Assembly: GCA_002104945.1 (NCBI GenBank)
Contig: MCFH01000027.1
Location: 1 to 64,000 of the forward strand
From: Piromyces finnis finn
Lineage: Eukaryota > Fungi > Neocallimastigomycota
Length of the DNA: 64,000 nt
Direction: 5' to 3'
Below, piece by piece: positions 26,313 to 63,132 of this stretch (the first letter of the stretch is position 1; every line of letters starts with the position of its first letter). The notes beneath the pieces are model-generated. The model was not told the origin of the DNA. It ran no database searches and worked only from the letters and a program-made list of their open reading frames with translations. Both the position numbers and the translations under genes were made by a program.

Positions 26313-27125
26313 TATAATAAATAATAAAATTAATAAATATAAAATTATTATTATACCTGATTTTTAAGTTAACCCTAAAAGTAACTTAAAACAAGTTATA
26401 GTTTAATTAAGTACCTTACCAAAATTCTTAAATAAAATTAATCCTAAACACTGCATATATTTTGATTATTGAAAGAAAATAATAAACTTTAATTAATCGA
26501 GATCAAAATATATAACTTTTGTTAAATTAATTATTAAATTAAATGTTTAATAACTTCGTTAGTAAATTACACTTTAAAAGTAAACAAATATAATAATTCA
26601 TGTTATAAAATAATATAATTAAACACCTTTATTAAAACATTAAAAATAATTATTACTTTAATTAATTGTAAAATAAACAACTTTTTATATTCTTTAACTT
26701 TTAATTATTTCTTTTATTGTTATTTCTAATTACTTTTATTACTTTTATTGTAAATAGTTATTAATATTATTGTTTTAATGTAAATAGTTTAAATTTAAAA
26801 GAAAATATAAATACATGTAAATATTCTTATTTTAATCATTATTATTATTATTAGTAAAGAAATATTATATAGTTAGATTAATATTTTATAATTTTAATAA
26901 TCACTTTTATACTTAAATAAATAAAATTTTAAATATTTAAATATTAGAAAAACAAGTGTTTCTAATAAAACAATTTAGTGTTTTAACAAAACAATTTTAT
27001 TAATTTTTATAAAAACGATTTTAAATCTTAATCAATATAACTTATATAGTTATAACAAAAGATATAATATAATAATCACTTTTTGAAGTAAAATTCAAAG
27101 TTAAGATTATTATCAAATTATATCA
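26313..27125 (+). mobile_element. Family C LTR-like repeat (about 800 bp), 12 bp upstream of tRNA-Arg
   Basis: Near-identical to 60460-61251 and to the reverse complements of 42252-43066 and 45552-46111. Consensus terminus TGTGATAAATAATG, here TATAATAAATAATA. Other end and TSD unresolved. Confidence 0.7.
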
Positions 27126-29467: not shown

Positions 29468-29605
29468 ATCGGATATTAAGGTTTTACCCGTTATCAATGG
29501 TTTTACTTAATATTACGATAATTGGTATGATTAGAATATCAATCAAATAACTTTTTAGGTTTTTCTTTTAGTCTTTTACTAAAAAGATTTTTGTTAAGAT
29601 TAGAA
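29468..29605 (+). ncRNA. Cis-acting structured RNA candidate: ENE-like stem, hairpin, H-type pseudoknot
   Basis: ATATTAAG/CTTAATAT lower stem, TTTT/TTTT internal loop, CCGTT/AATGG upper stem, then pseudoknot CTTTTTAG/CTAAAAAG with TTTTAGTCTT/AAGATTAGAA. Covaries with five other copies. Confidence 0.6.
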
Positions 29606-29903
29606 TGTTCTTAGAAATTTTAATTTAATAAAATAAAACATATAAATAGTACTCTTGAGTTCGATTTGAGAAATCAAGAGTTATTATTATAAGATTAATT
29701 ATAATAAATAACTTTATACAAAATAATAAGTAATAAAATAAATATTAAAAAACTATTAAATACACAAAATAATTCTGATACATTTGGTGTTTGTTTATTA
29801 TAATTTCTTATAATAAACTCATTAAGTTAAGTTTCTAATTTTATCTTTATTTTCACATTTTAATAATAATTTATATTATTAATTTGAAGCTAATAATTAT
29901 TAT

Positions 29904-30519: not shown

Positions 30520-31153
30520 ATTATTATATAATAAATATAATATAATTATTACATGTTGTTAAGGAACCAACAAATAATGTTATTCTTGTCATAATTAATG
30601 ATTATAACCTAATCCATTATTGTTCCTAAATGTATGAAAACTTTACAATATTCTTATTTGTAAATTAATGTATACACTTAAATTATATTTAAAATTATTA
30701 ATAATTATTTTTATTGAACTTAAATTTTATTTTATTAAACTTAAAAATTAATTTAGTAATAATAATATATTGAAAATTATAGTTTATTGAACTTTTAGTT
30801 TAATTTATCAAGTTAATGAATTTTTATTAATTAAAATTATGAATAATATTTCTGTAATGTAGTAAAATTCTTTAGTTAAATATATTTGAAGTAAACTTTT
30901 AATAATGTATGTTAATCGATTCAATAATATGTATAAATATTTATTATAATAGTAATGTAATTTTATTATTAATTTAAAAGTAATTTAAATACTAAAATTA
31001 ATGTAAATAATTAAAGAATAATTCTTTTAATTAACACTACTTAATTTTTTACAAAAAGTATAAAAAGGTGTATATTATAAGAATTAGAGAAGAGACAGAT
31101 ATTTTTTTATTTTCATTTTTTTTATTTTATTTTTATAATTTTATATTTATACC

Positions 31154-31592
31154 TGTAATGAATACTAGAAATAACTAAATTGTCTTAGTGGTTAGTAGCT
31201 AAGACTTTGAGTCTGAATGACACTAGTTCGAGACCTCATAGATACTATTTTAAAAAAATTATAATTTTATTTTATTTTATTTTATTTTTAAATTTTATTT
31301 TATATGAAGATTATTGATTGGTTAAGAATTTTAAGTTGAAAAAATTTTATAAATTAATTTAAAAAATTTTTAGTATAAATACGAGTGAATTTTCCCAAAT
31401 ATTTTAAAGAATCGAGATTTTATTAATAAATAATTATATTATTAAACACTAACTTATTAAGTTAAATTCTATGTGTTTTTAATGATATTTTTATAAATTA
31501 ATAATTTACAGAATATTTTAAAGTGTTAATATTACTAAGTTATTTAGTAAATATTATAATTTGTTTTATTGTTAAAGACACATTTCTTTACA
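31154..31592 (+). repeat. 5' LTR of retrotransposon 1
   Basis: TGTAATG...CTTTACA. TATAAAT at 31374-31380. Confidence 0.97.
31181..31234 (+). promoter_or_regulatory. tRNA-Gln(UUG)-like A-box/anticodon/B-box cassette in U3 (copy at 37263-37316)
   Basis: Maps at canonical spacing onto tRNA positions 8-61, retaining T8, A14, G15, G18, G19, A21, C32, T33, TTG, A37, C48, G53, TTC, G57, A58, C61. Acceptor and T stems are not paired. Confidence 0.6.
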
Positions 31593-31602
31593 ATAAAATC
31601 TC
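31593..31602 (+). promoter_or_regulatory. Self-priming type PBS
   Basis: ATAAAATCTC directly after the LTR is the exact reverse complement of GAGATTTTAT at 31414-31423 inside the LTR. No TGG-type tRNA PBS present. Confidence 0.7.
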
Positions 31603-32483
31603 CTTATAATATAAAAGCTTAATACCTTAGTGTTTAAGAAATTGTTATAGATAAAACTTTTAAGTTTTATTGTTGAAGCTTTTCTTTAAAGAAATATTTT
31701 TACTTAAAGTAGTAGAATTAGTACGCTTTAGAAGCGGTATATAATTCAAACTATAAAAAGTAAAAGATTAACGGGATCGAGTTTAACCTGTACAATAATT
31801 GGGTTGGCAGGCTCTGAGCTATTCTACTTTGAATAAGGAAGTAGGAGAATCCGAGGTACACCACGTACAAGACGCTGTAATAAGCAAGCTGGCGTGAGAT
31901 TTATAGTTGTATACTATCTTTTGCTGTTTGATTATAGACCGGAAAATAGCCGGAAATGCCTTACTTTAATAAAATAATATTTCTTAATTAATACATTTTA
32001 AAATTAAGTTTTCTAATAAAACAATTTCTAATTTTTAATTATAATTATTAATTGTTAAGACAATTTATTAAAATTGTAATAATATAAAATAATATTCTTT
32101 ATAACTCCTTTAGCGTGAGAAGTTAAACTCTTATACATAATACTTCTACGTTCGGATAAGGTTGATATAGGGAAAGAAAACCTGTAATAATTTTTATTGC
32201 TAACAATAAGTTAGACACTAAAAAAAATTTTTACACCGTTCCTTTCTTTTATTAATTTAATTAATATTAACAATCGACTTTATACGTGTTATCGTGAAGA
32301 GCTACGAAGGACTTATTATAAAGAATAAAACAGGTTATATATTTGATGGTTTAACACTATATAATCTGGTTTGTATTATTATTTAATAAAAAGATTTACT
32401 CAATTAATAAATATAATTAAATACTTTATTCTATTATTTTTACAAATTTATTAAAGCTTATTAAAGAAAACATCATAAGTACT

Positions 32484-35400
32484 ATGGAAGAGAACGAAAA
32501 CAACCACATGGATAATAATAATATTTTCGAAAACGCAACTCTTAAGGATGGTTTTGCAGGGGATCGCAGGTATCTGAAGGGTTTCTTAGCTAAGGTGGAG
32601 CTAGTGTTTATGCTATATCCTGAACGGTATCAAGACGACGCAACCAAAATTCTCTATATAATATCAAGACTTTATGGGGACGCTATGAATTGGGCTGCTA
32701 CTCTTATAAACAACCATGATCCGTGTCTTAATAACTACCAAGCTTTTGTTGACAGATTTAAGGCTTTTTATGGTTATAACGATGCTACCTATGTTGCAAA
32801 TCAAATGCTTAGAACCTTAAAACAACGCCGATTAGGAGGAATTAGAGGCTATATCTTGGAATTTAACCGCTATGCTGATGAATCAAACTGGAATGAACAA
32901 GCCAAAATGGATGCATTTATAGCTGGCCTTAATCAACAAGTTGCAGTTCGTATTTTGGAAATGTTTCCGGGTCCTAGGGATCTTCTTTCATTACAGACTA
33001 TTGCTTCAAGAATCGATTCAAGATTATCTACACACCATACCTTTTTCCCTTCTGGTTCAAACAATGACCAAAACCGAAAGAAAAGATCTTTTCATCACTC
33101 TTCAAAAATAACAAAGTCCATTACAAACAGGAATAACCATGGCCCTATCTCAAACGAAGAAAAGGAAAGAAGAAAGAAAGAAAATCTTTGTGTGTATTGT
33201 GGTGCTTCAAGTCATAAGATTAATAATTGTCCAAAAAGAAAGAATAAAGATCGTGAAAATCCTTCACTAATATCTATTCCCACACTTATATCCGCTCCTA
33301 AAGAAGAAAACAAAACTCATAATAAAATGACAACTAAATTTAAACTTTCTTATGAACTAAATACGGATATTCTTATTGACTCAGGATCCAAACTTAATTT
33401 AATTGATGTAGATTACTGTAACGATAATAACATTCCTTATCATGATGATGGTAACCTCCCAAATATCGTTGGTATCGGTGGTCGACAATCTCTTTTTGGA
33501 ATTACATCTCCTTTGAATCTTCGCTACAAAGATCATCTCTGTCGAACACAATTCTATGTAACTGATCTACCTTATTATCCTTGTATTCTTGGAATAGACT
33601 GGCTTAAAGAACACAATCCTTCTATCGATTTCACAAAGAACAAAATTTCATTTGTATCCGATTACTGTTATAATCGTTGTATAACACTCTCCAATAATGT
33701 CTCTGAATTTCCTGAAGAAAGATCTGCTTTTCCTGCAATGGAAGATCCTTCCTACGAACCTCCGCATGATTCATTCGCTTACCCTATATTTGTCGATAAA
33801 CAAAACATCCAATCTCAAAACGAAACTAATCGTACTTGTACTATTCTCTGTTCGGGTTCTTCAAAAAATATTAACAATTCTGTTTCTAAGAAGTCTTCTG
33901 TTAACTTTTCTACTTCGTCTCTCTCAAATCAAGAACCAACTTCTGTTTTGACTTCTTTTTCTGATTCTAATATTCATTCCAATTCTATTCTCAAATCCGA
34001 TTCAAACTCTAAATCAGAACCCAATTCTTCTATTATACTTCCGGATGTTCTCTCTGACTTTGCTGATGTCTTCAATGAATCTAATGCTGAAAAACTTCCT
34101 CCACACCGTCCATACGATTGTGAAATAAAACTCAAAGAAAATTCAAAACTGTTTTATGGACCGATTTATCCTCTAACAGAAACCGAATCAATTGCTTTAG
34201 AAGAATATATAAAAGAAAATCTCAAGAAAGGATTTATTAGAAAATCAAAATCGCCTGCGGGAGCTCCTATTCTGTTTGTACCTAAGAAAAACGGTCAACT
34301 TCGTATGTGTGTTGACTATCGCCAATTAAACTCCATAACTATTCGTGATTCTTATCCCCTTCCTCTTATACAAGATATGCTTGAACATCTTGGAAAAGGG
34401 AAGATTTTCTCAAAATTGGATCTTCGTTCTGCCTATAACTTGGTCAGGATTAAAAGTGGTGATGAATATAAAACCGCTTTTACTTGCAAGTTAGGTCATT
34501 TTGAATACTGTGTGATGCCTTTTGGGTTGAAAAATGCACCTGCTGTTTTTCAACATTTCATTAATGATGTTCTTGAAGACGTTCTTGGTAAATTCGCTTT
34601 CTCTTACATAGATGATATTATTATTTTTTCCTCTGATTATAAATCTCATATTTCTCATGTCAAAACTGTTTTGAAACTCCTGAGGGATGCTGGGCTCTAT
34701 GCTAAATTGGAAAAATGCGAGTTTTTTGTTTCTTTTATTGATTTCCTTGGTCATAGGATTTCTACTGATGGTATTCACATGGACCCAAATAAAGTTTCTT
34801 CTATTTTAAACTGGCCTACTCCATCTAATGTTAAAGAGGTTCAATCTTTTCTTGGTCTTGCGAACTACTACCGTCGATTTATTCCAAATTTTGCAAAGAT
34901 CGCTCATCCTTTGCATAAACTTTTGAAGAAAAATGTTAAATTTGTATGGTCTAAAGAAGCTCAAGATGCTTTCGATTCACTCAAGTCCTTATTTGTTTCT
35001 GCTCCTGTTCTTATATTTCCTAATCGTGAACTTCCATTCATAGTCGAAACTGATTCAAGTAACTTTGCCATTGGTGCTATTCTCTCGCAAGTCTCTCCAA
35101 TTGATAATATGACCCATCCAGTTGCTTTCTTTTCTCGCTCTCTTACTGGTCCTGAACGTAATTATCCAATATATGATAAAGAGCTCTTAGCTATCGTTGC
35201 TGCTCTTGAAACATGGCGTCATCTACTTAAAGGCTCTTCTTCTACTTTTAAGATTTACTCGGATCATCGAAATTTACTCTATCAAAAGAAACCTGAAAAA
35301 ATGTCTCAACGTCTTGTTCGCTGGGCTTTGTTTCTCTCTGAATTTAACTTTGTTATTATTTATCGTTCTGGTTCTTCTAACGGTAAGCCTGATGCTCTAT

Positions 35401-36338
35401 CTCGTCGTCCTGATTATGCTATCAATTCGAATTCCTCTTCTGATGTTCCTTTTAATGTTCTTCGCCCTGAAAACTTTTGTGCCATTGTGACTTCTGTTTC
35501 GTCCATTAGTGATTCTTTTCTTTCCGAATATATAAATGATGACTTTTACAATAAAATCTGTGAATATCTTGATTGTAGGAAACCTCCAATACCTCACCCT
35601 CAAATTGACAAATTTTCCTTAAGCAATAGTTTTCTCCTTTTTACTGACAGAATCTATGTTCCTCCAAATTGTCGTCTTTCAATTCTTAAACTCTGTCACG
35701 ACTCTCCTTCAGCTGGTCATTTCGGAATAAAGAAAACATCTTCTCTTATTGCTAGAGACTTCTGGTGGCCTTCTATTTCTTCTGATGTTAAAGACTACGT
35801 TCGTTCTTGTGAAGTTTGTTGTCGTTCAAAAACCTTTCGTCATAAACCTTATGGTCTTCTGAATCCTCTTGATATTGCTGAGCGTCCTTGGTCATCCATT
35901 TCAATGGATTTCATTACAGATTTGCCTTCATCTTCTGGTTTCACTTGCATTCTTGTTGTTGTTGATCGTCTTACAAAAATGGTTCATCTCATTCCGTTCA
36001 AAAGTATTCCTTCCGCCGCCGAAACAGCCACAGCCTTTATTGATAATATTTTCCGTCTTCATGGCCTACCTGAATCTATTGTCTCGGATAGAGGTTCTCA
36101 ATTTACCTCTAAATTCTTCCAATCCATCTGTTCCTCCCTTGGCATTGAACTTAAGTTGTCTACTCCATTTCATCATCAATCAAACGGTCAGACGGAGAGG
36201 GTGAACTCCGTTATAGAACAATATTTAAGATGTTTCTCAAATTATAAAGGTTCAAATTGGAAAAGTTTTCTTAGTCTTGCAGAATTTAGTTATAACAACG
36301 TGGTCCAAGAATCATCCAAATTTTCTCCATTCTTTTGA
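32484..36338 (+). CDS. Gag-Pol polyprotein: capsid, CCHC knuckle, protease, RT, RNase H, integrase core
   Basis: [14 protein letters not shown] knuckle, LIDSGS protease, [21 protein letters not shown] RNase [13 protein letters not shown] and MDF..SDRG..E integrase motifs. Confidence 0.95.
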
Positions 36339-36925
36339 ATTACGGCTTTCATCCAAAATATTCACCAGTTATTCCAGACTTATCTAAAGTCCCAAGAGCA
36401 GAAGAGTTTACAAGAGATTTTAAAACTTTAATTAATACCTTAAAAGAAAATTTAAAATCTGCCATGGAAACCCAGAAGAAGCATGCTGACAAACGTAGAA
36501 AAGAAGCTCCGAATTTTAAAGTTGGTGACAAAGTTTGGCTGGATAGTTCTTTAATTATCCACAAAGGAAATAAAAAATTTAAGCCAAGAAAACTCGGCCC
36601 ATACAAAATCTTGGAAAAAATATCAAATGTTACATTTAAATTAAGTCTCCCAAAATCTATTAAGATTCATCCAGTTATTCATGTATCCAATCTCGAGAAA
36701 TATGTCGAAGATAAATTTGGAAGATCTCAACCACCACCGCCACCTATTACCGTTGACAATGAAGAAGAATACGAAGTTGAAGAAATTCTGGATAAAAGAA
36801 GACATTACGGAAAAATACAATACCTGATTAAATGGAAAGGGTATTCAATCAATGAAGCTTCGTGGGAGCCTGAAGAAAATCTAAATTGCAAGGGGCTACT
36901 TAAAAAATTTAATAGAAAGAAATAA
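36335..36925 (+). CDS. Integrase C-terminus with GPY motif and chromodomain, separated from the main ORF by a 1-nt frameshift
   Basis: [22 protein letters not shown]...YLIKWKGY...SWEPEENL. Adding one T to the run at 36333-36336 restores the reading FFLNYG. Confidence 0.9.
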
Positions 36926-37223
36926 AAAATAGTTAAAAAATTCAAATTATATTTATTATTAATATTAAAATCACAATTATTATTATTATCAAAACTTATT
37001 AATATCATTATCAATATCAATTTTATTATTAAACAATTTATTAATATCAAATTTATCAATATTTTATTTTTAACTTTAGTAATATTAAAAAAAAAAAAAT
37101 GTATTTTATTATATTAAATGTATTTTTATAATTAAGAAAATTCACTCCTTAGTTTAGTTTATTAAAAAAGAAAAACATATATTTAAATATTAAAATTCTA
37201 GATTCGTCTGGTATCCGAATCCT

Positions 37224-37235
37224 GGAGGAGGACCA
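37224..37235 (+). promoter_or_regulatory. Polypurine tract of retrotransposon 1
   Basis: GGAGGAGGACCA immediately before the 3' LTR. Confidence 0.8.
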
Positions 37236-37674
37236 TGTAATGAATACTAGAAATAACTAAATTGTCTTAGTGGTTAGTAGCTAAGACTTTGAGTCTGAAT
37301 GACACTAGTTCGAGACCTCATAGATACTATTTTAAAAAAATTATAATTTTATTTTATTTTATTTTATTTTTAAATTTTATTTTATATGAAGATTATTGAT
37401 TGGTTAAGAATTTTAAGTTGAAAAAATTTTATAAATTAATTTAAAAAATTTTTAGTATAAATACGAGTGAATTTTCCCAAATATTTTAAAGAATCGAGAT
37501 TTTATTAATAAATAATTATATTATTAAACACTAACTTATTAAGTTAAATTCTATGTGTTTTTAATGATATTTTTATAAATTAATAATTTACAGAATATTT
37601 TAAAGTGTTAATATTACTAAGTTATTTAGTAAATATTATAATTTGTTTTATTGTTAAAGACACATTTCTTTACA
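37236..37674 (+). repeat. 3' LTR of retrotransposon 1
   Basis: Copy of 31154-31592, followed by TSD ATACC. Confidence 0.97.
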
Positions 37675-38327
37675 ATACCCTAATAAAAACAAATTTATTA
37701 ATAAAACGATTTTTCTTATTTCATTTTAATATTATTCTTGAGTATTAATAAATTTATTAATATTTTATAAATAAAATTAAAATTCCTCGAACCGTAACAT
37801 TGTGATAAAGAATGAAATTTATAAATAATGAATTAATAGAATAGCTGATTTTAAAATTACATAAACTTAATATAAATTAAAATAATAGTAAATAATCAAA
37901 ATAATATAAAATATAAATGTTTAATTAAATTTTAAAAATGTAAAATATAAACAACTTTTGTTTATAAACAAACTTAAATGTAATTATTTATTATAAATAT
38001 AAATAGAAAATATTATTTTAAAAACTGTTACTAATTAGCCAGGAAAATTAGAATATTTTAATAATAAAATAATAAATTAATATTTTTTTTATAATACATA
38101 GCGAGATGTATTATATATTTATTTTAAATAAATAAACTAATATTATAAAACAAGATGTGTTTTCTAATTTTTAAACTTTATTTATAAATTATATAAAACT
38201 TGTAGAATGAGCAAGTAAAAATAAATCATTCAAATACACACCAAATATACCATTTTCTAAGCTTATTTAGTATTTATAAATTATATAAAACTTGTAGAAT
38301 GAGCAAGTAAAAATAAATCATTCAAAT

Positions 38328-45021: not shown

Positions 45022-45551
45022 TGTTATGGTTCGAGGAATTTACTTTTATTTATAAAATATTAATAAATTTATTAATACTCAAAAATAATATTAAAATGAA
45101 ATAAGAAAAATTGTTTTATTAATAAAATTGTTTTATTAAGATATTAATATAAAATTATAAAATAAAATAAAAATAAAAATAAAAATATCTGTATATTCTC
45201 TAATTCTTATAATATACACCTCTTTATACTTTTTGTAAAAAATTAAGTAGTGTTAATTAAAAGAATTAGTCTTTAATTATTTACATTAATTTTAGTATTT
45301 AAATTACTTTTAAATGAATAATAAAATTACATTACTATTATAATAAATATTTATACATATTATTAAATTGATTAACATACATTAAAAGTTTACCTTAAAT
45401 ATATTTAACTAAAGAATTTTACTATTTTACAGAAATATTATTCATAATTTTAATTAATAAAAATTCATTAACTTGATAAATTAAACTAAAAGTTCAATAA
45501 ACTATAATTTTCAATATATTATTATTACTAAATTAATTTTTAAGTTTAATA
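45022..45551. mobile_element. Family D repeat (empty-site copy for retrotransposon 1), truncated and fused to family C
   Basis: Starts TGTTATGGTTCGAGG; reverse complement of the sequence flanking retrotransposon 1. Confidence 0.75.
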
Positions 45552-46111
45552 CTATATAATATTTCTTTAATAATAATAATAATAATGATTAAAATAAGAA
45601 TATTTACATGTATTTATATTTTCTTTTAAATTTAAACTATTTATATTAAAATAATAAAATTAATAACTATTTACAATAAAAGTAATAAAAGTAATTAAAA
45701 ATAACAATAAAAGAAATAATTAAAAGTTAAAGAATATAAAAAGCTGTTTATTTTACAATTAATTAAAGTAATAATTATTTTTAATGTTTTAATAAAGGTG
45801 TTTAATTATATTATTTTATAACATGAATTATTATATTTGTTTACTTTTAAAGTGTAATTTACTAACGAAGTTATTAAATATTTAATTTAACAATTAATTT
45901 AACAAGAGTTATATATTTTGATCTCGATTAATTAAAGTTTATTATTTTCTTTCAATAATCAAAATATATGCAGTGTTTAGGATTAATTTTATTTAAGAAT
46001 TTCGGTAAAGTACTTAATTAAACTATAACTTGTTTTAAGTTACTTTTAGGGTTAACTTAAAAATCAGGTTTAATAATAATTTTATATTTATTAATTTCAT
46101 TATTTATCACA
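45552..46111 (-). mobile_element. Family C repeat, truncated, 13 bp upstream of tRNA-Ala
   Basis: Ends TTATCACA at 46111; matches the other C copies. Confidence 0.75.
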
Positions 46112-46124
46112 AAAGGCAGTAGCT

Positions 46125-46196
46125 GGGGATATAACTCAGTGGTAGAGTGCTTGCTTTGCATGCAAGAAGCCTCGGGTTCGATCCCCGATATCTCCA
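46125..46196 (+). tRNA. tRNA-Ala(TGC)
   Basis: GGGGATA/TATCTCC acceptor, CTTGC-TTTGCAT-GCAAG anticodon arm, GGTTCGATCC T-loop. Confidence 0.96.
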
Positions 46197-46934
46197 TATA
46201 TTAATTTTAACTTTTTATTAATAGTAAATTTTTAAAATTATCAAATAGGTAAAGAAATTCTTATTTTATTGTTTTATAATTTTCTAAATACTATATTTTG
46301 TACTTTTGTTAATTAAGATTAAAAAGTGTTTTATTTAAAGTCTTAAATAATTGAATTAGATATTTTATATGTATATAAAAATATATTGTAATTTTTCTTA
46401 ATTAAATTTATATAGTTCATTATATTAATTATTTCTACAATGAAATAATTTAATGTATAACAAACGTAAGAATATGTAAAGCAAAAGAATAAAGTAAATG
46501 TACGGTTCATATAATTCTGGTATTATCATAATTGAACAATTAGCCTTATTAGTATAAACAAACTAAAGAGTAATTATTTTTAAAAAAGGTTTCTTGCTTT
46601 AGTTAATTTTATATAGTTAATGATAACAATAAACGTTATAGTATTTAGAAACAATAAAACTATTGATACGTAATAACTAATATAGTCAATTACTTTTTAT
46701 TTTAATTAATTTATTTAATTCTAGAACATTTTTAAAATATTTTATTATTTAATTAAACTTTATTTATGAACAAAATATTTTCTGTATAATGTTCATATTT
46801 ACTTTAATAAAAACTTCTCTTTCTTTATATTTTATATAAATCCTAATACAGCTTTACGTCTAATAATATTAAATTATATATATCTTAATAATTTAAAATA
46901 TAGAAGAAAAAATATTTTATTTACATAAAAATAT

Positions 46935-47072: not shown

Positions 47073-47833
47073 TGTCACGAATACTAGTGAAATTACAATT
47101 TCAAGATCACTTGGAATTGTGAAATCACTTATGAAAATTCAAAATCAACAAATATTTTATTTTCAAATAAATTATAAAATTTTATTAAGAAATATTTAAA
47201 AATTTAGGAAAGGTTAAAATATGACCTTAACCCTTAATAATTTTTATAATAAATAACTTTAACCCTTATCGTTAAAATGGAATAAGAAAAAACACGCGTA
47301 TCTCCTCAACGAATGACGATTTTTGAATAAAAATATTTTGGTTATAATTACGTTCGTTAGAAAGCCACGCTCGAGACAAACAACATATCTTAAAATCAGC
47401 CTTAGTATTATAAAATATATTATGAATATAATCATGTACTAAAAAGTTATTTTAGTATTAAATGTAAAATTACAAATAGTATAAATAGTTTAGAATAGTT
47501 ATGAAATTAAAATCTTTGTAAAAATTATTAACTATAAATTATTAACTATAAATTATTAACTATAAATTATTAACTATAAATTATTAACTATTAATAATAA
47601 TTAATACTTAATGAGTATTACTACTAAATAATCTTATTATTATATTTTAGCAATATATTATTAAATAAAATAAAAGAAATTATTTTAACCATAATATATA
47701 ATTTAATTATTCATTTATAAATCAATTAAGATTATTTTAATAAAACATTTTTTTTTCTAACCTAGTTATCTTTTAACCTTTTATTTAATTTAATATTTTA
47801 ATATTAAATTATAAGTTTAGTAAAACTTTTACA
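47073..47833 (+). repeat. 5' LTR of retrotransposon 3 (761 bp; internal deletion; 14-bp repeat x5)
   Basis: Aligned by eye to the 3' LTR. Confidence 0.93.
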
Positions 47834-47898
47834 ATAATCTTTACCGCGTTTTTTACCATAACTACCTTAGGAAAAAACTTAATTTAAAAATTTAAAAA

Positions 47899-48810
47899 AT
47901 GACTCAACCAACACCTAAACCAGTTCAACAATTCCTAAAGCCTCAAGATTTAGAAGAATTTAAAAAAAATCTTTGTGGTGAATTAGACAAGTATATCACT
48001 CAACAATTGGATAAAAATACCACCTCCTTGTTAGAACGTATGGATGCTATGTTAAAGGAACTTAAGAGTCGTGCTAATTATACTGAAACCGAGGAATCTT
48101 CTACTGATTATGATGAAGATCATGATGTTATAATGCGTAATAGAACCTATCCTATCAAACAAGTACCAGATCCAGGATTCTTTACCGGTGATACTACTCA
48201 GACTGAGTTATTCTGCGAACTCTGCCAAGCTACCTTTAAAACTCCACCTAACAATCAACTATCTGAAGAAGTAAAAATTAACTTTGTTGTTGTTAGATTA
48301 CGTGATTCTGCCAGAACTTGGTATCATATTAAATATAAAGATGGTATTACTCCTATGACTATGAACGAACTATTAAGTGAATTAAACAAAGCTTTTTCAA
48401 ATGTTACCAGTACCAAATTAGCCATGATTCAATTAATAGAATTAAGACAAGCTTATGGAAAAGTGAACGATTATATTAACAAATTTAGAGATTTAAGTCG
48501 TTGTTTAGAGATAGATGACATTAGTCTTTCACTAATATTTTTAAATGGTTTACATCCAAAATATAAGAATGAAATTAAGAAAGCTGATATTTTACCTAAC
48601 ACTTTAAGTGAAATGGTTACAAAGTGTATAATTTTTGAAAATTCTCTTGCTACTAATAATAAATTAAATATCAATAATAATAATAATAAAAATCAACATT
48701 ACAATAAGAGAAACAATAGGAAATTCAATAAGAATAAAACCCATTATCAAAATTCAAACAATAATAATAATTATGTCAATAAAGTTCAAAAAATGAACTC
48801 AAAAAACTAA
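47899..48810 (+). CDS. Gag (303 aa), no zinc knuckle evident, Asn-rich C-terminus
   Basis: Position after the 5' LTR and capsid-like motifs (PDPGFFTG, RLRDSARTWY, VNDYINKF, FLNGL). Confidence 0.85.
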   Translation: MTQPTPKPVQQFLKPQDLEEFKKNLCGELDKYITQQLDKNTTSLLERMDAMLKELKSRANYTETEESSTDYDEDHDVIMRNRTYPIKQVPDPGFFTGDTTQTELFCELCQATFKTPPNNQLSEEVKINFVVVRLRDSARTWYHIKYKDGITPMTMNELLSELNKAFSNVTSTKLAMIQLIELRQAYGKVNDYINKFRDLSRCLEIDDISLSLIFLNGLHPKYKNEIKKADILPNTLSEMVTKCIIFENSLATNNKLNINNNNNKNQHYNKRNNRKFNKNKTHYQNSNNNNNYVNKVQKMNSKN

Positions 48811-48845
48811 GAAATGAACTCTCAAGAGAGTCTAAGAGAGTTCAT
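48801..48845 (+). promoter_or_regulatory. -1 programmed ribosomal frameshift signal
   Basis: A AAA AAC heptamer in the gag frame just before TAA, 6-nt spacer, perfect 10-bp stem ATGAACTCTC/GAGAGTTCAT. The -1 frame is open from 48783 into pol. Confidence 0.88.
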
Positions 48846-51800
48846 AATACAAAAATAATACATTACAACTTTCCTACATATGACTCTAAAATAAATAAAA
48901 AATTGCCTACAACATTTTTCAACTTAAAATTTTTTATCCCAATTAAATTAAACAAACTTTATGATTTAAAAAATTCAATTAATAAAAATCAATACAATTT
49001 AATTTTAGATAGTGGCTCATATTGCAACTTTATTTCAATCAACTTGGTCAATAAATTAAAACTAAAACCACACAAATTATTACACTCAATTGAAATAAAT
49101 GGAATTAGTGGTTCAATATTTATTGATACATACACCTTCTTATATTTTAAGACTACTATCTATATTAATCATTCAAAATTTTTAATTACTTTTAAAGAAA
49201 AATTTCTAATTATTAAAAATCTTCCAACAGATTTGTTATTAGGCAATAAATTTTTACACAAATATCAACTACATTTTAATTATAATAAAAATTTTGTATA
49301 TTCAAGTTTAAATTTTAACAATTTTAAAAAATTAAATTCTAATAAAATTATATATAAAATTAATAAAAACCGATTGAATAAATCCAAAAATTTAAAAATT
49401 AAAAACATTAATCATAATAAATTAACTTCCAATACATCTTTTAATAATTTGAAAAATTGCTCTAAACCAAAATATCAAAATTTCAGCTATAATTACTTTA
49501 TTCACTCATTTTTAGCTAATAGTGAAAAAGATTATAATACTGATGATGAAGATGATAATGAAGAAGACTTCAAATTAGAAGAAGTACCAGAACCATATCG
49601 TGATTTAGCGGAAGTTTTCAGCAAGGTTAAGGCTGATAAACTACCACCACATAGGCTAACGGATTGTAAAATCGTTTTACAAAAAGATGCTTCTTTACAT
49701 TATGGTCCTATATATCCTCTATCTGAAGATGAATCTCTAGTTCTTAAAGAATACATAGATGAAAATCTCAAGAAAGGATTCATTAGACCATCTGAATCTC
49801 CAGCTGGTTATCCTGTTTTATTTCAGAAAAAGAAGGATGGATCGTTACGTCTTTGTATTGATTACAAAAAATTAAATGCAGTTACAATTCGCAATTCTTA
49901 CCCACTTCCTCTAATTACTGATATTATCGAAAGAGTGAAAGGTGCTAAATTCTTTTCAAAATTAGATCTTCGTTCTGCTTACAATTTAGTGCGTATTCGT
50001 GAAGGAGACGAATATAAGACAGCTTTTAGAACTAAATATGGTCACTATGAATATTTAGTAATGCCTTTTGGTCTAAGAAATGCCCCTGCTACATTTCAAT
50101 CATTTATTAATTCAGTATTACGCCCTTATTTAGAAAAATTTGTTATTTTATATTTAGATGATATTCTGATTTATTCGAAAACATTAGATGAACATATACA
50201 ACATGTTCGTACTATTCTCCAAACATTGCTCAAAAATAATTTATTTGCTAAATTAAAGAAATGTGAATTTCACAAGCCAGAAGTTGAATTTTTAGGACAC
50301 GTTATATCAGGCAATGGTATATCTACTGATCCAAAGAAAATTAAATCTGTCCAAGAATGGCCTACACCTAATTGTGTAAAAGATGTTCAACGCTTTGTTG
50401 GATTATGCAACTATTATAGAAGATTTATAAAAGATTTTGCTACTATTGCTAAACCGCTTCACAATTTAACAAAGAAAAATACTAGTTTTAATTGGAATGA
50501 TAAATGTAATAACTCATTTTTAGAATTAAAAAAGAGACTAATCTCTTCACCTATTTTATTACATCCAGATCCAACCAAACCATTTATTGTCGAATGCGAT
50601 GCTAGTAATTTTGCCATTGGTTGTATACTTTCTCAAAAGGATGAAGATAACAAATTACATCCTGTAGCATATTATTCAAGATGTTTAAACAATGCTGAAT
50701 TAAATTATTCAATTACTGAAAAGGAACTTTTAGCTATAAAATGTGCATTTTCTACCTGGAGACATTTATTACTAGGTGCTAAATACCAAGTAACCGTTTT
50801 TACTGACCATAAAAACCTTCTATACACCTTAGGTGGTAAAGTCGGAAACCAACGTCAACATCGTTGGCATTTACTTTTCCAAGAATATAATTTTCAATTA
50901 ATATACCGCCAAGGAAGAAAAAATGGTAAACCTGATAGTTTATCAAGAAGACCTGATTACGAGAAAAATAATGTTGAACCTAAACCAGAACATATATTAG
51001 ATTATAAAAACGTTCCCGATACTCCATGTTTTGTTGGTATTGTTGGTTCCCTCATTGATCAAATAATAGAAAATTATAAGGATGATGAAAATGCGAATAA
51101 TATTTATCTTTACTTTAGTCCTAATAATGCTAATCAAGGTTACTTTTACAGGCCTTTCAGAAAAATGGAAAAATTTAAAATAAAAAATAATTTAATTTTA
51201 TATAATAATTTAATTTATGTACCAGAAAAACTTCATGTAGATATTTTAACCAGGTACCATGATAACGCTACTGCTGGACATTTAGGTATTCGAAGAACTG
51301 AAGAACTAATTAACCTTAATTTTTGGTGGCCCAAAATGCATCAAGATATCGTAAATTTTGTCAATTCTTGCGAACAATGTTCCAGAAATAAAGTTAATAG
51401 ACATAAAAGATATGATCTTTTAAGACCTTTAGAAATTCCTGATCGCCCTTGGAAATCTATTGAAATCGATTTTCTTTGTGGTCTCCCTGAATCAAAAAAG
51501 TTTTCCGTTATAATGGTTGTTGTAGATCGCTTTTCAAAAATGATTCACCTTATTCCGTTCAAAGAAATACCTACAGCTGAAGAAACTGCCAAAGCTTTCC
51601 TAAAAAATATTTTTAAACTCCATGGACTACCTACAGATATTTATACGGACAGAGGAACACAATTTACTAGTGCTTTATGGATAGAAATTATGGAAAAATT
51701 GCGTGTTAAGCCAAAAATAGCTACCACAGATCACCATGAGACCGTTGGTCAAGTAGAACGTTGTAACTCTTTCATTGAACAATATTTACGTTGCTATTCA

Positions 51801-52508
51801 AGAACATTTTTCCACGATGACTGGATTGAATGGTTACATCTAGCTGAATTTGTTTATAATAATACAGTTCATGAATCTACAAAACAAACTCCATTTTTCA
51901 TTAATTATGGATTCCACCCACCTATGGATGATGTCTTTTTGTTTCAAGGTTCTGATTCAAACTTTAAATACATTAAAGATGTTAGTAAAAATTTCCTTTT
52001 AGTTAAAGATGTTTTGCTTAGATCTCAAGATTTATACAAAAGAGCTGCCGATAAGAAAAGAATTATTGCTCCTGAATTGAATGAAGGACAAAAAGTTTGG
52101 ATTCATGCACCTCCTGCTTTTGCTACTACTGAAAATGCCAAACTAGCGCCTCGTAAGTATGGTCCTTACAAGGTTTTAGAAGTTTTAAACAATGGTAATT
52201 ATAAAATAGATATTTCAAAATCACCTTTTCCAAAACACCACCCTGTATTTCACATATCGGAACTTGAACCTTATGTATCTACGCCAGATAAATTTAAAAA
52301 TAGATTTAAATATAAAGAAACTAATGCAGAAATTATAGAAATTGGTGACTTTAGGACAAATTATAAAGAAAAACGCTACGAATATAAAATTCGTTATAAA
52401 CACCGCCTAAGTTGGCACTGGGTTCCTGCTACAGTAATAGAAAGTGACCCAAGATATCAAGAATTATTAATTCAATTCAATAAAAGTATTAGAAAACACA
52501 AAATCTAA
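48801..52508 (+). CDS. Pol (protease, RT, RNase H, integrase, degenerate chromodomain), expressed as a Gag-Pol fusion
   Basis: LILDSGS, YLDDIL, ECDASNFAIGCIL, YHDNATAGHLG..C..C, IDF..TDRG..E, YGPYKV. No internal stops; frame stays open upstream of the TTG used by the ORF track. Confidence 0.94.
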   Translation, partial: KKLRNELSRESKRVHNTKIIHYNFPTYDSKINKKLPTTFFNLKFFIPIKLNKLYDLKNSINKNQYNLILDSGSYCNFISINLVNKLKLKPHKLLHSIEINGISGSIFIDTYTFLYFKTTIYINHSKFLITFKEKFLIIKNLPTDLLLGNKFLHKYQLHFNYNKNFVYSSLNFNNFKKLNSNKIIYKINKNRLNKSKNLKIKNINHNKLTSNTSFNNLKNCSKPKYQNFSYNYFIHSFLANSEKDYNTDDEDDNEEDFKLEEVPEPYRDLAEVFSKVKADKLPPHRLTDCKIVLQKDASLHYGPIYPLSEDESLVLKEYIDENLKKGFIRPSESPAGYPVLFQKKKDGSLRLCIDYKKLNAVTIRNSYPLPLITDIIERVKGAKFFSKLDLRSAYNLVRIREGDEYKTAFRTKYGHYEYLVMPFGLRNAPATFQSFINSVLRPYLEKFVILYLDDILIYSKTLDEHIQHVRTILQTLLKNNLFAKLKKCEFHKPEVEFLGHVISGNGISTDPKKIKSVQEWPTPNCVKDVQRFVGLCNYYRRFIKDFATIAKPLHNLTKKNTSFNWNDKCNNSFLELKKRLISSPILLHPDPTKPFIVECDASNFAIGCILSQKDEDNKLHPVAYYSRCLNNAELNYSITEKELLAIKCAFSTWRHLLLGAKYQVTVFTDHKNLLYTLGGKVGNQRQHRWHLLFQEYNFQLIYRQGRKNGKPDSLSRRPDYEKNNVEPKPEHILDYKNVPDTPCFVGIVGSLIDQIIENYKDDENANNIYLYFSPNNANQGYFYRPFRKMEKFKIKNNLILYNNLIYVPEKLHVDILTRYHDNATAGHLGIRRTEELINLNFWWPKMHQDIVNFVNSCEQCSRNKVNRHKRYDLLRPLEIPDRPWKSIEIDFLCGLPESKKFSVIMVVVDRFSKMIHLIPFKEIPTAEETAKAFLKNIFKLHGLPTDIYTDRGTQFTSALWIEIMEKLRVKPKIATTDHHETVGQVERCNSFIEQYLRCYSRTFFHDDWIEWLHLAEFVYNNTVHESTKQTPFFINYGFHPPMDDVFLFQGSDSNFKYIKDVSKNFLLVKDVLLRSQDLYKRAADKKRIIAPELNEGQKVWIHAPPAFATTENAKLAPRKYGPYKVLEVLNNGNYKIDISKSPFPKHHPVFHISELEPYVSTPDKFKNRFKYKETNAEIIEIGDFRTNYKEKRYEYKIRYKHRLSWHWVPATVIESDPRYQELLIQFNKSIRKHKI

Positions 52509-53430
52509 TTCTTTAAATTGCATTTCAACAATTTTATTTTTTAAAAATTTATTAATATCTTTCACTAACATTATGTTTTATTATAATTTGTATTACTCAT
52601 CTAATACATTTCAACACAAATTTCAAAAATTTTTTTCTATGAATGTTAAATTTCAATTCAATAATTTTTGATCCAACAATTTTATCAATTTATTTAATTT
52701 AAAACACAAAATTTTTATAATGAAAATTAAATATTTAAAGAGAATAATTTTCAATTTATTTTAGCAGTACAATTACAAATATTTATATGTTGTTAATGCT
52801 TATTTTATTCTCTATTCAATAGTATCAATTTCAATATTGTCACTATCTCGATCGATCATTAAAATCAATATTTTTCAGTGACATTTTTTCAAAAAGTTTA
52901 GTTCAAAATTTTTTTTGTATTTAATGAAAAAATTTTTTATTATTAAAAATTTTTCAAAAATTTCAAAAATTTTTTTTTTTTTCAAAATCATATTAATTAA
53001 AGTTTATTTGATCAATTTTTGAAATTTCAATTATTTTAGCAAATGTTAACATTTTTCAAAAATAAAAAGTGTTTCATTATCCTAGGAATAATATTTCTTA
53101 TTCAAATTTTAATTTTTCGTACGAATTTCAATTTTTTCACTCAATGATCAATTTAAATTTCAACATTTCTTTCAAAAATTTTATGAATTTGACTGAATGT
53201 TACACAAGAAAATGTTTTTTAATTTTTTTTCATATATTGCAATATATTCATCATATTATATTAAATATATTCTTTATTTAGTTACCATTTTATTTCATGT
53301 TACACATACAACTATATATTGGTTTATATTTAATATATACTACTTCAATTTATTTCAATTATACTTTATTATACAACTTTATTTTATATTATTTCAATCG
53401 CCTGGTATTCGATTTTTTTTGGCGGAGCGA

Positions 53431-54646
53431 TGTCACGAATACTAGTGAAATTACAATTTCAAGATCACTTGGAATTGTGAAATCACTTATGAAAATTCAA
53501 AATCAACAAATATTTTATTTTCAAATAAATTATAAAATTTTATTAAGAAATATTTAAAAATTTAGGAAAGGTTAAAATATGACCTTAACCCTTAATAATT
53601 TTTATAATAAATAACTTTAACCCTTATCGTTAAAATGGAATAAGAAAAAACACGCGTATCTCCTCAACGAATGACGATTTTTGAATAAAAATATTTTGGT
53701 TATAATTACGTTCGTTAGAAAGCCACGCTCGAGACAAACAACATATCTTAAAATCAGGTCAATATCTCTGCTGGTTCATGAGATATTCCAATTTAAAGAT
53801 ATTTTGTTAGCAATGATTAATTGTTTATTCAGAGAATGATCACCCCTGATATATCAAACATAAATCATTCACTCAAAGTATAAAAATTATTGTTTAATTA
53901 AATCAAAATTATTTTCCGGAACTAATTAACTTTATTTTATAATAATTATTTCAATAACATAATTTATAATCTTTGAACTAGAGGATTATAATTATTGATA
54001 TTATATTCAATGAATTATATTATAATTAAGAAATAATTAATATTATGAATATTATAAACAATAGTTATTTTTTAATAATTAGGAATAAGTCTTAAGTTTA
54101 GTTTAAGTATTATAAAATATATTATGAATATAATCATGTATTGAAAAATTATTTTATTATTAAATGTAAAATTACAAATAGTATAAATAGTTTAGAATAG
54201 TTATGAAATTAAAATCTTTGTAAAAATTATTAACTATAAATTATTAACTATAAATTATTAACTATAAATTATTAACTATAAATTATTAACTATAAATTAT
54301 TAACTATAAATTATTAACTATAAATTATTAACTATAAATTATTAACTATGAATTATTAACTATGAATTATTAGCTATAGATTATTAACTAGAAATTATTA
54401 ACTATTAATAATAATTAATACTTAATGAGTATTACTACTAAATAATCTTATTATTATATTTTAGCAATATATTATTAAATAAAATAAAAGAAATTATTTT
54501 AACCATAATATATAATTTAATTATTCATTTATAAATCAATTAAGATTATTTTAATAAAACATTTTTTTTCTAACCTAGTTATCTTTTAACCTTTTATTTA
54601 ATTTAATATTTTAATATTAAATTATAAGTTTAGTAAAACTTTTACA
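53431..54646 (+). repeat. 3' LTR of retrotransposon 3 (1216 bp; 14-bp repeat x13 at 54224-54405)
   Basis: TGTCACG...TTTTACA followed by TSD ACGTT. Confidence 0.93.
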
Positions 54647-61259: not shown

Positions 61260-61842
61260 TGTAAGAATTTAATATATAATTTTAATTATATATGTACATT
61301 CTTAACTACAATGTAATAATACACTGTAAGTAATATAATAATATAACTATATACACAAAATAATTAAAGCGTATCTTTAATGTTTGTTTTATTCTTATTT
61401 TAATTTATTTAATAATTTTTCTTTTGATATAATTTTTAAAAAATTTTTATTAAAAATTCTCTTAATAAGTTTTGAGTTTATTTTTTCTTACAAAGAAAAA
61501 ATAATAACTCTTGAATTTTTTAATTAAATTCAAGAGTTGTTTTATTTATAGGAATTTTAAAATTTTAGGTTAAATTAAAGAATTTTCTAGTCTAACAAAT
61601 AAATCTTCTAGGGAAAGACTAGATAAGAAAACCCTAGAATAATTTCGATTAATAATATATTCTTATTAATCACCGAATAATTAAATCAAAACCTATTTGT
61701 GATAGGAAAAATATTTAATATCCGGTTCCTATTAATTTTACTTTAATTTTAATTTAGATAATAATATAAACTAAATAATTAAATAAAATGTTTAATATAA
61801 TTAAACTAAAACTACAATTTAATTTACATTACAAATATTACA
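61260..61842 (-). mobile_element. Family F LTR-like repeat (diverged relative of B/E)
   Basis: Same hairpin, pseudoknot and ENE layout (61586-61726) at the same distance from a TGTAAG end. Right boundary uncertain. Confidence 0.55.
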
Positions 61843-61954: not shown

Positions 61955-62383
61955 TGTAAGAAATATAGAAATAAATTCTATATTTCTTAAGTATTATTAA
62001 GTATAAATTTATATTAAATTTATTATTTATTATAATTCTATTTTATAATTAAATTAAACAAACCTTAAAGAATATAGAAATTTACTCAATTCATTCAATA
62101 ATGTTCAATTAAAAAAATATAATAAATAGAAATATCCAGTAAAAGAAATATTTAGATTAATTTTTAATATATATAAATTAAGTCATTAATATTAAAAATA
62201 AATTAAATAATATTTTTCCAAAATCAATTTGGTTTTTTAATTATTTAATTCAACAAGTAATTCTTCAGGTTTTTCTTCTAGTCTTTTCCTGAAGAAACAA
62301 CAACCAGACTAGAATCCAATAAAAAGCCATAAATAACAAATTATTAATCAATTTAATAAATTAAAATTTCATGATTTAATATA

Positions 62384-62463
<80 letters not shown>

Positions 62464-62524
62464 TTATAACAAAATAAAAAAAATTCTTAAAAAACATTTT
62501 TAACCCTTTTCGTCTTTAAGTGTC
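61955..62524 (+). mobile_element. Diverged B-like LTR remnant carrying the ENE/pseudoknot module (62201-62314)
   Basis: Starts TGTAAGAAATA like the sense 5' end of family B, with the module 246 bp in. Interrupted by family H at 62525. Confidence 0.5.
62384..62460. repeat. (AAT)25 microsatellite
   Basis: Direct observation. Confidence 0.95.
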
Positions 62525-63132
62525 TGTAAAAGTATAAAATTTAAAACAGATTTTATACTTAAAACGAAACAATTTTTATTAACACAAAAATAAAAAATAA
62601 AACATTAAATTTTTATTTAAAAAAAAACATTTTTATTTAAACTCTTAAAAATATTATTAACTATATAATAGTTAATAATTAAAAAATTGAAAATAACAAT
62701 TACATCGATTTAATAAACAAAAATTACATGTATTTGTATTTTTCATAATTATATTCTAATATATTATTCTATTTAAATAAACATATATTTAATATAAAAT
62801 AAACAACACTAATCTAATTAAATAATAAAATAGCAAAACTAAACTAAAACTAATTCATTATACTTTTAATTCAATTTGAGTAAACTCAAAATTGAATAAA
62901 GCCCATGTATTTTCTATAAATTAATTTAATATTATCAATACTATTCTTAATATATTTCCTATTGAAATATAAATAAATCTATTTTTAAAACTAAGTTAAA
63001 ATTATTAAACTATTCTGTAAAAGTATAAAATTTAAAACAGATTTTATACTTAAAACAAAACAATTTTTATTAACACAAAAAATAAAAAAATAAAACATTA
63101 AATTTTTATTTTAAAAAAAAACATTTTTATTT
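62525..63132 (-). mobile_element. Family H repeat plus a partial tandem copy (63016-63132)
   Basis: TGTAAAAGTATAAAATTTAAAACAG at 62525 and 63016; matches 38328-38935. Confidence 0.75.

Follow-up and report, generated by a model that had tools for sequence, protein, structure and literature searches.

Triple helices like those of ENEs (elements for nuclear expression) count among the few known mechanisms by which an RNA shields its own poly(A) tail, and in 2025 the mobility of a plant retrotransposon was shown to be driven by one. The crystal structure of the ENE from the PAN RNA of KSHV (Kaposi's sarcoma-associated herpesvirus) contains five U-A-U triples and three A-minor triples (PMC7583470). 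In the ENE of Evade, the G-C pairs flanking the U-rich loop are essential (PMC12501189). In plants and fungi, ENEs are associated with long terminal repeat (LTR) retrotransposons (Tycowski, Shu and Steitz 2016, cited by PMC12501189 and PMC7583470). By these citations, ENEs in fungal transposons are already published, and that part of the present work is not new in kind. A second related system is self-priming. The first 11 nt of Tf1 RNA pair with the PBS (primer-binding site), and RNase H cuts them off as the primer (PMC7175516), and self-priming of Tj1 was deduced from the same layout (PMC4600332). Here we describe a cis-acting RNA structure, hereafter the module, in the LTRs of a Tf1-like, self-priming clade of Ty3/gypsy retrotransposons in the very AT-rich gut fungus Piromyces finnis (Neocallimastigomycota). 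It was analyzed in a stretch of 64,000 nucleotides, the window (GCA_002104945.1, contig MCFH01000027.1, positions 1 to 64,000 of the forward strand), in the whole genome and in gut-metagenome relatives. A literature search for this phylum together with ENEs or LTR pseudoknots, which did not include the fungal taxa list of Tycowski 2012/2016, found nothing.

An earlier reading of the window, made from the sequence only (the sequence-only reading), had claimed six copies of a two-part structure, a U-loop hairpin followed by a pseudoknot. All six were found: two copies each of families A and B, and the copies of families C and D. In the D copy, which had been called the clearest, stems, loops and linker can be read from the sequence exactly as described. 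The order of the hairpin (H1) and the pseudoknot holds in all copies, but a third hairpin between them (H2), present in families A, B and C, had not been listed. The copies and the parts of the D copy are as follows, with bit scores from the covariance model introduced below.

62201-62250, plus strand: hairpin H1 of the D copy, seen in the sequence; its minimum-energy fold is a hairpin with an internal loop, and the covariance model match has 34.7 bits
62201-62211 / 62240-62250, plus strand: lower stem of H1, D copy
62212-62217 (5', ATTTTT) and 62233-62239 (3', TTTTTTA), plus strand: loop strands of H1, D copy
62218-62222 / 62228-62232, plus strand: upper stem of H1, CCAAA/TTTGG, D copy
62261-62314, plus strand: H-type pseudoknot of the D copy, separated from H1 by a 10-nt linker; seen in the sequence and in the covariation of its stems S1 and S2
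62261-62269 / 62288-62296, plus strand: stem S1, D copy
62270-62275, plus strand: loop L1, TTTTTC, D copy
62276-62284 / 62306-62314, plus strand: stem S2, D copy
62285-62287 and 62297-62305, plus strand: loops L2 (TTT) and L3 (ACAACAACC), D copy
61585-61731, minus strand: C copy with H1, H2 and pseudoknot, 73.5 bits; C is the LTR of the full-length element L061
58646-58800, minus strand: B2 copy with H1, H2 and pseudoknot, 182 bits
44538-44692, minus strand: B1 copy with H1, H2 and pseudoknot, found by the covariance model; B is the LTR of the full-length element L054
57112-57255, minus strand: A2 copy with H1, H2 and pseudoknot, 92.9 bits
29462-29605, plus strand: A1 copy with H1, H2 and pseudoknot, 71.1 bits
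29175-29904, plus strand: the A-family LTR that holds A1, starting with TGTAAG; the first part of another LTR takes the place of its last ~45 bp

The consensus module is ~115-160 nt long and consists of H1, H2 and the H-type pseudoknot. The internal loop of H1 is formed by facing U-tracts, R-UUUU-(U/C) on the 5' side and UUUU-A on the 3' side. H2 is a 9-bp hairpin in families A, B and C, and is absent from D-type families. The pseudoknot has an S1 of 8-10 bp, an L1 of UUUUUC, an S2 of 8-9 bp, an L2 of UUU and an L3 of 9-14 nt. The A1 copy is slightly decayed, in S2 (TTTTAGTCT) and in the 3' arm of S1 (ACTAAAAAG). The loop of H2, G(A/U)UUAGA (29524-29546 on the plus strand, and the same place in A2, B and C), nearly repeats the 3' arm of S2, AGAUUAGAA. 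An alternative conformation is therefore conceivable, in which the 5' arm of S2 forms a kissing interaction with the H2 loop. The H2 loop of L037, GACUAGA, is perfectly complementary to UCUAGUC.

The covariance model was built from the two identical B copies only, with H1, H2 and S1 as pairs and S2 left unpaired. It recovers all six copies in the window, with scores from 182 to 35 bits. Weak matches in the internal transcribed spacer ITS1 of the ribosomal DNA (rDNA; 21.7 bits, at 939-1049 and its repeats) are attributed to chance. The sample for covariation consisted of one representative per genome score class, D-like and C-like copies, and gut-metagenome relatives, giving 22 distinct sequences aligned to the model. 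The pairing cells amount to 95.2%, versus 82.5% in shuffles. Changes on both sides are observed at 29 of the 46 pairs, versus 15.4±1.8 in shuffles (none of 500 shuffles reaches 29) and 6-15 in slid controls, in which the partner was shifted by 1-3 columns. A lack of covariation in a larger alignment, which the sequence-only reading had named as a refutation, was not observed. Because the model alignment leans toward H1, H2 and S1, to which the model was fitted, the pseudoknot was also aligned alone with MAFFT, with no structure fitted. It is an H-type pseudoknot with two covarying stems: both-side changes occur at six of nine pairs in S1 and three of nine in S2 (slid controls 2-5), and 92.5% versus 83.9% of cells are pairing.

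S2 was never part of the model, and its variants are UUCUAAUCU/AGAUUAGAA, UUCUAGUCU/AGAUUAGAA (with G-U), UUCUAGUCU/AGACUAGAA, UCAUAAUCU/AGAUUAUGA (L083) and CCAAAUCU/AGAUUUGG (L088). Thus, the pairing in the pseudoknot is backed by compensatory change, beyond two conserved 9-mers. Compensatory changes are present in all five helices. The H1 lower stem of L088, AUGUUAAUUGAA/UUCAAUUAACAU, has nothing in common with those of other families and frames the same loop. Folding z-scores of the sense strand range from -2.7 to -5.9, and the sense strand is the one with the more stable fold in families A, B and C. G-U pairs are numerous, and only on this strand. The LTRs of A and B can be aligned only from the module to just past the primer described below. 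Chance is excluded as the source of the fold, which rests on covariation and goes beyond the sequence alone.

The genome-wide searches covered the assembly of 56,455,805 bases in 232 contigs. From 4,766 first-look candidates, at least 150 matches with E<5e-12 were scored with the covariance model. The genome therefore contains at least 150 module copies, and the scores of the matches group into many discrete classes, each of them an LTR family. The diversity amounts to ~15 families with many compensatory changes in each stem. Relatives whose polyprotein is 73-75% identical to that of the B element have the full module, and so does L088 (68%), with different stems. L089 and L080 (64-65%) have a D-type module in their LTRs, with H1 and the pseudoknot and without H2. 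L083 (59%) has the pseudoknot only, 15 nt before the TATA box, and no U-loop hairpin. The module was sought and not found in the relatives P0022 (53%) and P0023 (42%; DNA with 46% G+C). A pattern scan of the metagenome gave five loci, and only the one in L064 is a true module. One relative of the element's protein is labelled Orpinomyces. From this distribution, the pseudoknot looks like the core of the module, and H1 and H2 seem to have been added to it or to be parts that an element can lose.

The carriers are Ty3/gypsy elements. Full-length A elements have LTRs of 775 bp with TG..CA ends, a 5-bp target duplication (AAAAC) and an open reading frame (ORF) of 1,344 amino acids, which encodes gag, protease, reverse transcriptase, RNase H and integrase and is oriented as the module. 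The full-length elements of families B (L054) and C (L061) are built in the same way. The Pfam domains of the polyprotein (gag, RVP_2, RVT_1, RNase H, Integrase_H2C2, rve and SH3_Tf2-1) are those of Ty3/gypsy. These full-length elements bear out the proposal that the module belongs to one LTR-retrotransposon clade. The proposed location in LTRs holds for A, B and C, with the module on the sense strand; in D it is only deduced, by way of the D-type relatives L080 and L089. The D family is represented in the genome by seven decayed copies, and its element could not be defined from them. The D copy in the window abuts a microsatellite and an unrelated LTR of ~495 bp at 62521-63016.

Downstream of the module, every family has TATA(A/T)A(A/T)R, then a hairpin (hairpin 3), and then the invariant string TCAAGAGTTATTATTATAAG. 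In the window, these features are located as follows.

29641-29648, plus strand: conserved TATAAATA after A1, the likely TATA box; the same box follows the other copies
57076-57069 (A2), 44502-44495 (B1), 58610-58603 (B2) and 61550-61543 (C), minus strand: the same likely TATA box
29676-29687, plus strand: AAGAGTTATTAT after A1, a putative self-primer, probable start of R and 3' arm of hairpin 3
57041-57030 (A2), 44466-44455 (B1), 58575-58564 (B2) and 61512-61501 (C), minus strand: the same 12-mer AAGAGTTATTAT

The 12-mer is present once per LTR. Its exact reverse complement is present once per element, directly after the 5' LTR (L001-L003, L054, L061 and metagenome relatives). The PBS is thus complementary to a sequence of the 5' LTR and not to a tRNA 3' end; at the level of sequence, the 12-mer and its complement are the signature of Tf1-type self-priming. 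The distance from the TATA box to the 12-mer is 26-38 nt in all families. Because of this distance and the parallel with Tf1, we infer that transcription starts at the 12-mer (AAGAGUUAUUAU in the B element). The module would therefore be located in U3; the RNA would contain it only close to its 3' end, in the 3' untranslated region (UTR), and not at its 5' end. A conserved AATTATAATAAATAAC lies ~30 nt after the 12-mer, and conservation stops beyond it. This string (AAUAAAUAAC in the B element) is likely to be the poly(A) signal, implying a short R, and the module would lie roughly 125-250 nt before the predicted poly(A) site. An ENE would need to lie in just such a place, in the 3' UTR and upstream of the likely poly(A) signal.

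Several observations touch this layout. B1 is a solo or 3' LTR, because its end at ~44230 is not followed by a PBS. A PBS-like 12-mer at 44141-44130 on the minus strand does not adjoin this end and is unrelated to the B1 LTR. The B element was found in three sequencing runs, whose type is only guessed to be RNA. Metagenome contigs were considered as transcripts with informative ends and rejected; they break at A-runs, are circularly permuted across the LTR, and look like DNA assemblies. Hairpin 3 (ACTCTTGA...TCAAGAGT; 29652-29687 on the plus strand, L054:1189-1224, and all other families) spans the predicted U3/R border. Its 3' arm is the putative self-primer, and its 5' arm resembles the PBS (AACTCTTC). 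Because it straddles the predicted start, hairpin 3 could form in the RNA at the 3' end only, and would mask the primer there. The 3'-only module and the 5' arm of hairpin 3 together may be a way for a self-priming element to tell its two RNA ends apart.

The reading preferred here, by analogy and with a probability of roughly 0.4, is ENE-type protection of the RNA 3' end. The module would be transcribed once per genomic RNA, in the 3' UTR, by virtue of a start downstream of it, and would protect or control the polyadenylated 3' end. H1 would be an ENE-type clamp that forms U-A-U triples with the poly(A) tail. The pseudoknot, folding independently, would be a second element and would brace H1 or block exonucleases.

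The features of H1 are consistent with such a clamp. The likeness of its U-tracts to ENEs, already pointed out in the sequence-only reading, stands, and the C-G pairs that close the loop above also resemble ENEs. Among 20 distinct scorable sequences, the 5' loop strand is mostly GUUUUU, AUUUUU, GUUUUC or GUUUUA, and the 3' strand is UUUUA (17/20), UUUUG (2/20) or UUUUUUA (1/20). These loop strands are called invariant, while both flanking stems covary. Minimum-energy folds leave the U-strands as an internal loop, that is, as opposed U-tracts. The first of the two pairs above the loop is C-G in 17 sequences and U-G in two; the second is C-G in 19. The pair below the loop is G-C in 15 of the 20.

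Other observations weigh against ENE-type protection. In the remaining five of the 20 sequences, which represent three family types (C, D and the metagenome relative L088), the pair below the loop is A-U or U-A. The U-tracts have only 4-5 U per strand, and U runs are cheap in a genome with 13-15% G+C outside genes. The lower stem of H1 is almost all A-U, where PAN has G-C pairs for A-minor contacts. H1 is ~250 nt from the predicted poly(A) site, and it is not indispensable, because L083 keeps the pseudoknot without the U-loop hairpin. A match to a curated ENE or other RNA model did not emerge for any copy in Rfam 15, either at the gathering score or at E<=10, although which ENE models Rfam 15 contains is not established. 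Transcription start, poly(A) site and even expression are deduced from the sequence. No conserved encoded A-tract was found. In the more distant relatives (L083:4849-4870, L089:4786-4800 and L091:100-120), the TATA box is directly preceded by an encoded tract of A8-A10, which families A, B and C do not have. This tract could be an encoded partner of the U-tracts, or could be meaningless in AT-rich DNA.

A more specific form of ENE-type protection is tentative and rather doubtful as a whole. The module might be a new composite 3'-end device, confined to U3 and made only by the 3' LTR copy, in which the ENE-type poly(A) clamp is combined with an obligatory pseudoknot as the older core. The pseudoknot could then represent a new class that blocks exonucleases or selects the poly(A) site.

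It is unlikely that the module is an enhancer of 3'-end processing, which activates cleavage and polyadenylation in the 3' LTR while the identical signal in the 5' R stays silent. The U3 upstream element of human immunodeficiency virus 1 (HIV-1) works as such a 3'-LTR polyadenylation enhancer. With the likely AAUAAA placed in the predicted R, ~30 nt after the start, both RNA ends would carry it and need to be discriminated. The module is always upstream of the poly(A) signal, 15 to ~220 nt from the TATA box, and L1, L2, L3 and the H1 loop are U-rich. Known upstream elements are, however, short and unstructured, with U-rich or UGUA motifs, and five covarying helices exceed what such a role needs.

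Equally improbable is a platform for proteins in the 3' UTR, serving nuclear export, as the constitutive transport element (CTE) of Mason-Pfizer monkey virus (MPMV) does, or packaging by Gag/nucleocapsid, or binding of a host U-binding protein. The putative contact motif, AGGUUUUUC, is found at two sites, one in the H1 loop (5' strand) and one where S1 meets L1, and the repeated GGUUUUUC motif does not vary at either. Conservation of the H2 loop G(A/U)UUAGA and of the S2 sequence points to recognition of sequence as well as shape. Yet no protein that binds the module is known, and the packaging signals of studied retroelements sit in the 5' leader.

Quite improbable is a role in reverse transcription, in which the U3 structure beside the 3' R promotes the first strand transfer or bridges the 5' and 3' ends of the genome, in parallel to the bipartite PBS of Ty3 and the CYC5/CYC3 pairing of Ty1. 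The module lies 15-220 nt upstream of the 3' R, the landing place of the minus-strand DNA, and is found only in elements with the self-priming architecture. Hairpin 3, lying across the U3/R border and formed only at the RNA 3' end, would hide the primer sequence. However, no conserved complementarity between the module loops and the 5' leader was found, and the distance from the module to R varies widely.

It is very improbable that the module is in R rather than U3, with a start upstream of it and a copy at both RNA ends, so that it would act as a 5' leader, like the trans-activation response element TAR, in translation or dimerisation. TATA-like strings are also present upstream of the module, such as TATAAAAG at 29399 in family A. 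Such strings are, however, ubiquitous in DNA this AT-rich and are not conserved between families, whereas the TATA box 26-38 nt before the self-primer is kept in every family. The Tf1 primer forms the extreme 5' end of that element's RNA (PMC7175516).

The absence of any RNA structure, with U3 promoter or enhancer sites acting as DNA or with chance palindromes, is disfavoured as extremely improbable: the module does lie just upstream of the promoter, and a generic scan for 8+8-bp pseudoknot-like arrangements returns many chance matches in this AT-rich DNA, but binding sites keep sequence and not pairing, whereas here all five helices carry compensatory changes, stem sequences can be wholly different between families, as in the H1 lower stem of L088, and G-U pairs are tolerated on one strand only.

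Three rDNA repeats occupy the first 23 kb of the window (1-23000), with a period of 8,534 bp and an opposite-strand 5S gene in each spacer (5379-5497, 13913-14031 and 22447-22565). The remainder consists of nested LTR elements, very AT-rich (13-30% G+C), including Ty3/gypsy ORFs. Two intact-looking Ty3/gypsy elements at 31151-37677 and 47073-53757, with LTR identities of 99.8% and 100%, belong to other families and have LTRs without the module; the second, whose LTR starts at 47073, lies 66 bp from a tRNA-Thr gene. An LTR-like repeat is present in two 97%-identical copies, at 26310-26873 on the plus strand near tRNA-Arg (26227-26300, minus strand) and at 45551-46114 on the minus strand near tRNA-Ala (46124-46197, plus strand). 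Each copy stops ~10 bp short of its tRNA gene's 5' end, and the two pairs share one relative orientation. By analogy, this placement looks like that of Ty3 and Tj1, which are known to target sites upstream of Pol III genes. At 25223-25980, a tandem array of ~50 units of a 15-bp repeat overlaps a spurious ORF of 178 amino acids.

New here are the layout of self-primer and TATA box that puts the module in U3, the third hairpin H2, and the pseudoknot as the most widely kept part. If poly(A) binding is true, the range of ENEs would widen to include Tf1-like gypsy elements and, apparently, a fungal phylum new to them. If the module is a composite device, it would be a structured-RNA family without an Rfam counterpart, present in hundreds of copies in a fungal phylum that has been little studied. 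Of the two halves, the conserved pseudoknot is of greater interest: it has no described LTR counterpart and is retained where the U-loop hairpin has gone. The natural diversity of the module suits structure probing and reporter assays.

Compared with known systems, the likeness to the telomerase pseudoknot that had been proposed is weak. Both are of the H type with a U-rich first loop, but the 3' strand of the module's S2, AGAYUAGAA, is broken by pyrimidines where a run of A would be expected, and S2 does not form a run of U-A pairs. The expected A/C-rich L3 is found only in the D type (ACAACAACC), whereas L3 is U-rich in most families, as in AUUCUUGUUA. The telomerase-type arrangement, a U-rich L1 facing an A-U run in S2 with an A-rich L3 in the minor groove of S1, was not found. 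The three S2 pairs near the junction (UCU/AGA) are invariant, so that at most three triples with loop 1 are conceivable. The stems of the module are separated by a 3-nt L2, and the module, present in many copies in LTRs, lacks a template or TERT context.

To our knowledge, no structured module in U3 has been described for Tf1, Tf2 or Tj1 of fission yeasts. These elements share with the module carriers a polyprotein of the Ty3/gypsy type, where the carriers' integrase contains a Tf2-1-like SH3 domain, and a PBS that pairs with the 5' LTR sequence taken as the RNA start (PMC7175516, PMC4600332). The primer is 11 nt in Tf1 and 12-13 nt in the module carriers. The HIV-1 U3 upstream polyadenylation element and the MPMV CTE likewise act in cis after transcription and are confined to the 3' part of a retroelement RNA. 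They have no sequence or fold in common with the module, and these are functional analogies only.

The ENEs are the closest in form. The KSHV PAN ENE has a G-C-rich A-minor platform, which is missing in the module with its lower stem of almost all A-U, and the module allows only 4-5 triples. The host RNA of the former is a viral long non-coding RNA, and that of the latter is a retroelement genome. With the ENEs of plant and fungal transposable elements, including that of Evade/Copia93, the module shares a stem-loop, opposed U-tracts in an internal loop and closure by G-C pairs, which in the module lie above the loop and, in most families, below it (PMC12501189, PMC7583470). The plant ENEs are mostly double-domain, in contrast to the single U4-5/U4 loop of the module. 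The Evade ENE is also in the 3' part of an LTR-retrotransposon RNA, and it protects the poly(A) tail from deadenylation (PMC12501189), a role assigned to the module by likeness only. It lies between the ORF and the LTR of a copia element, whereas the module lies inside U3 of the LTR of Tf1-like gypsy elements. In contrast to the known ENEs of transposable elements, H1 is always followed by a pseudoknot.
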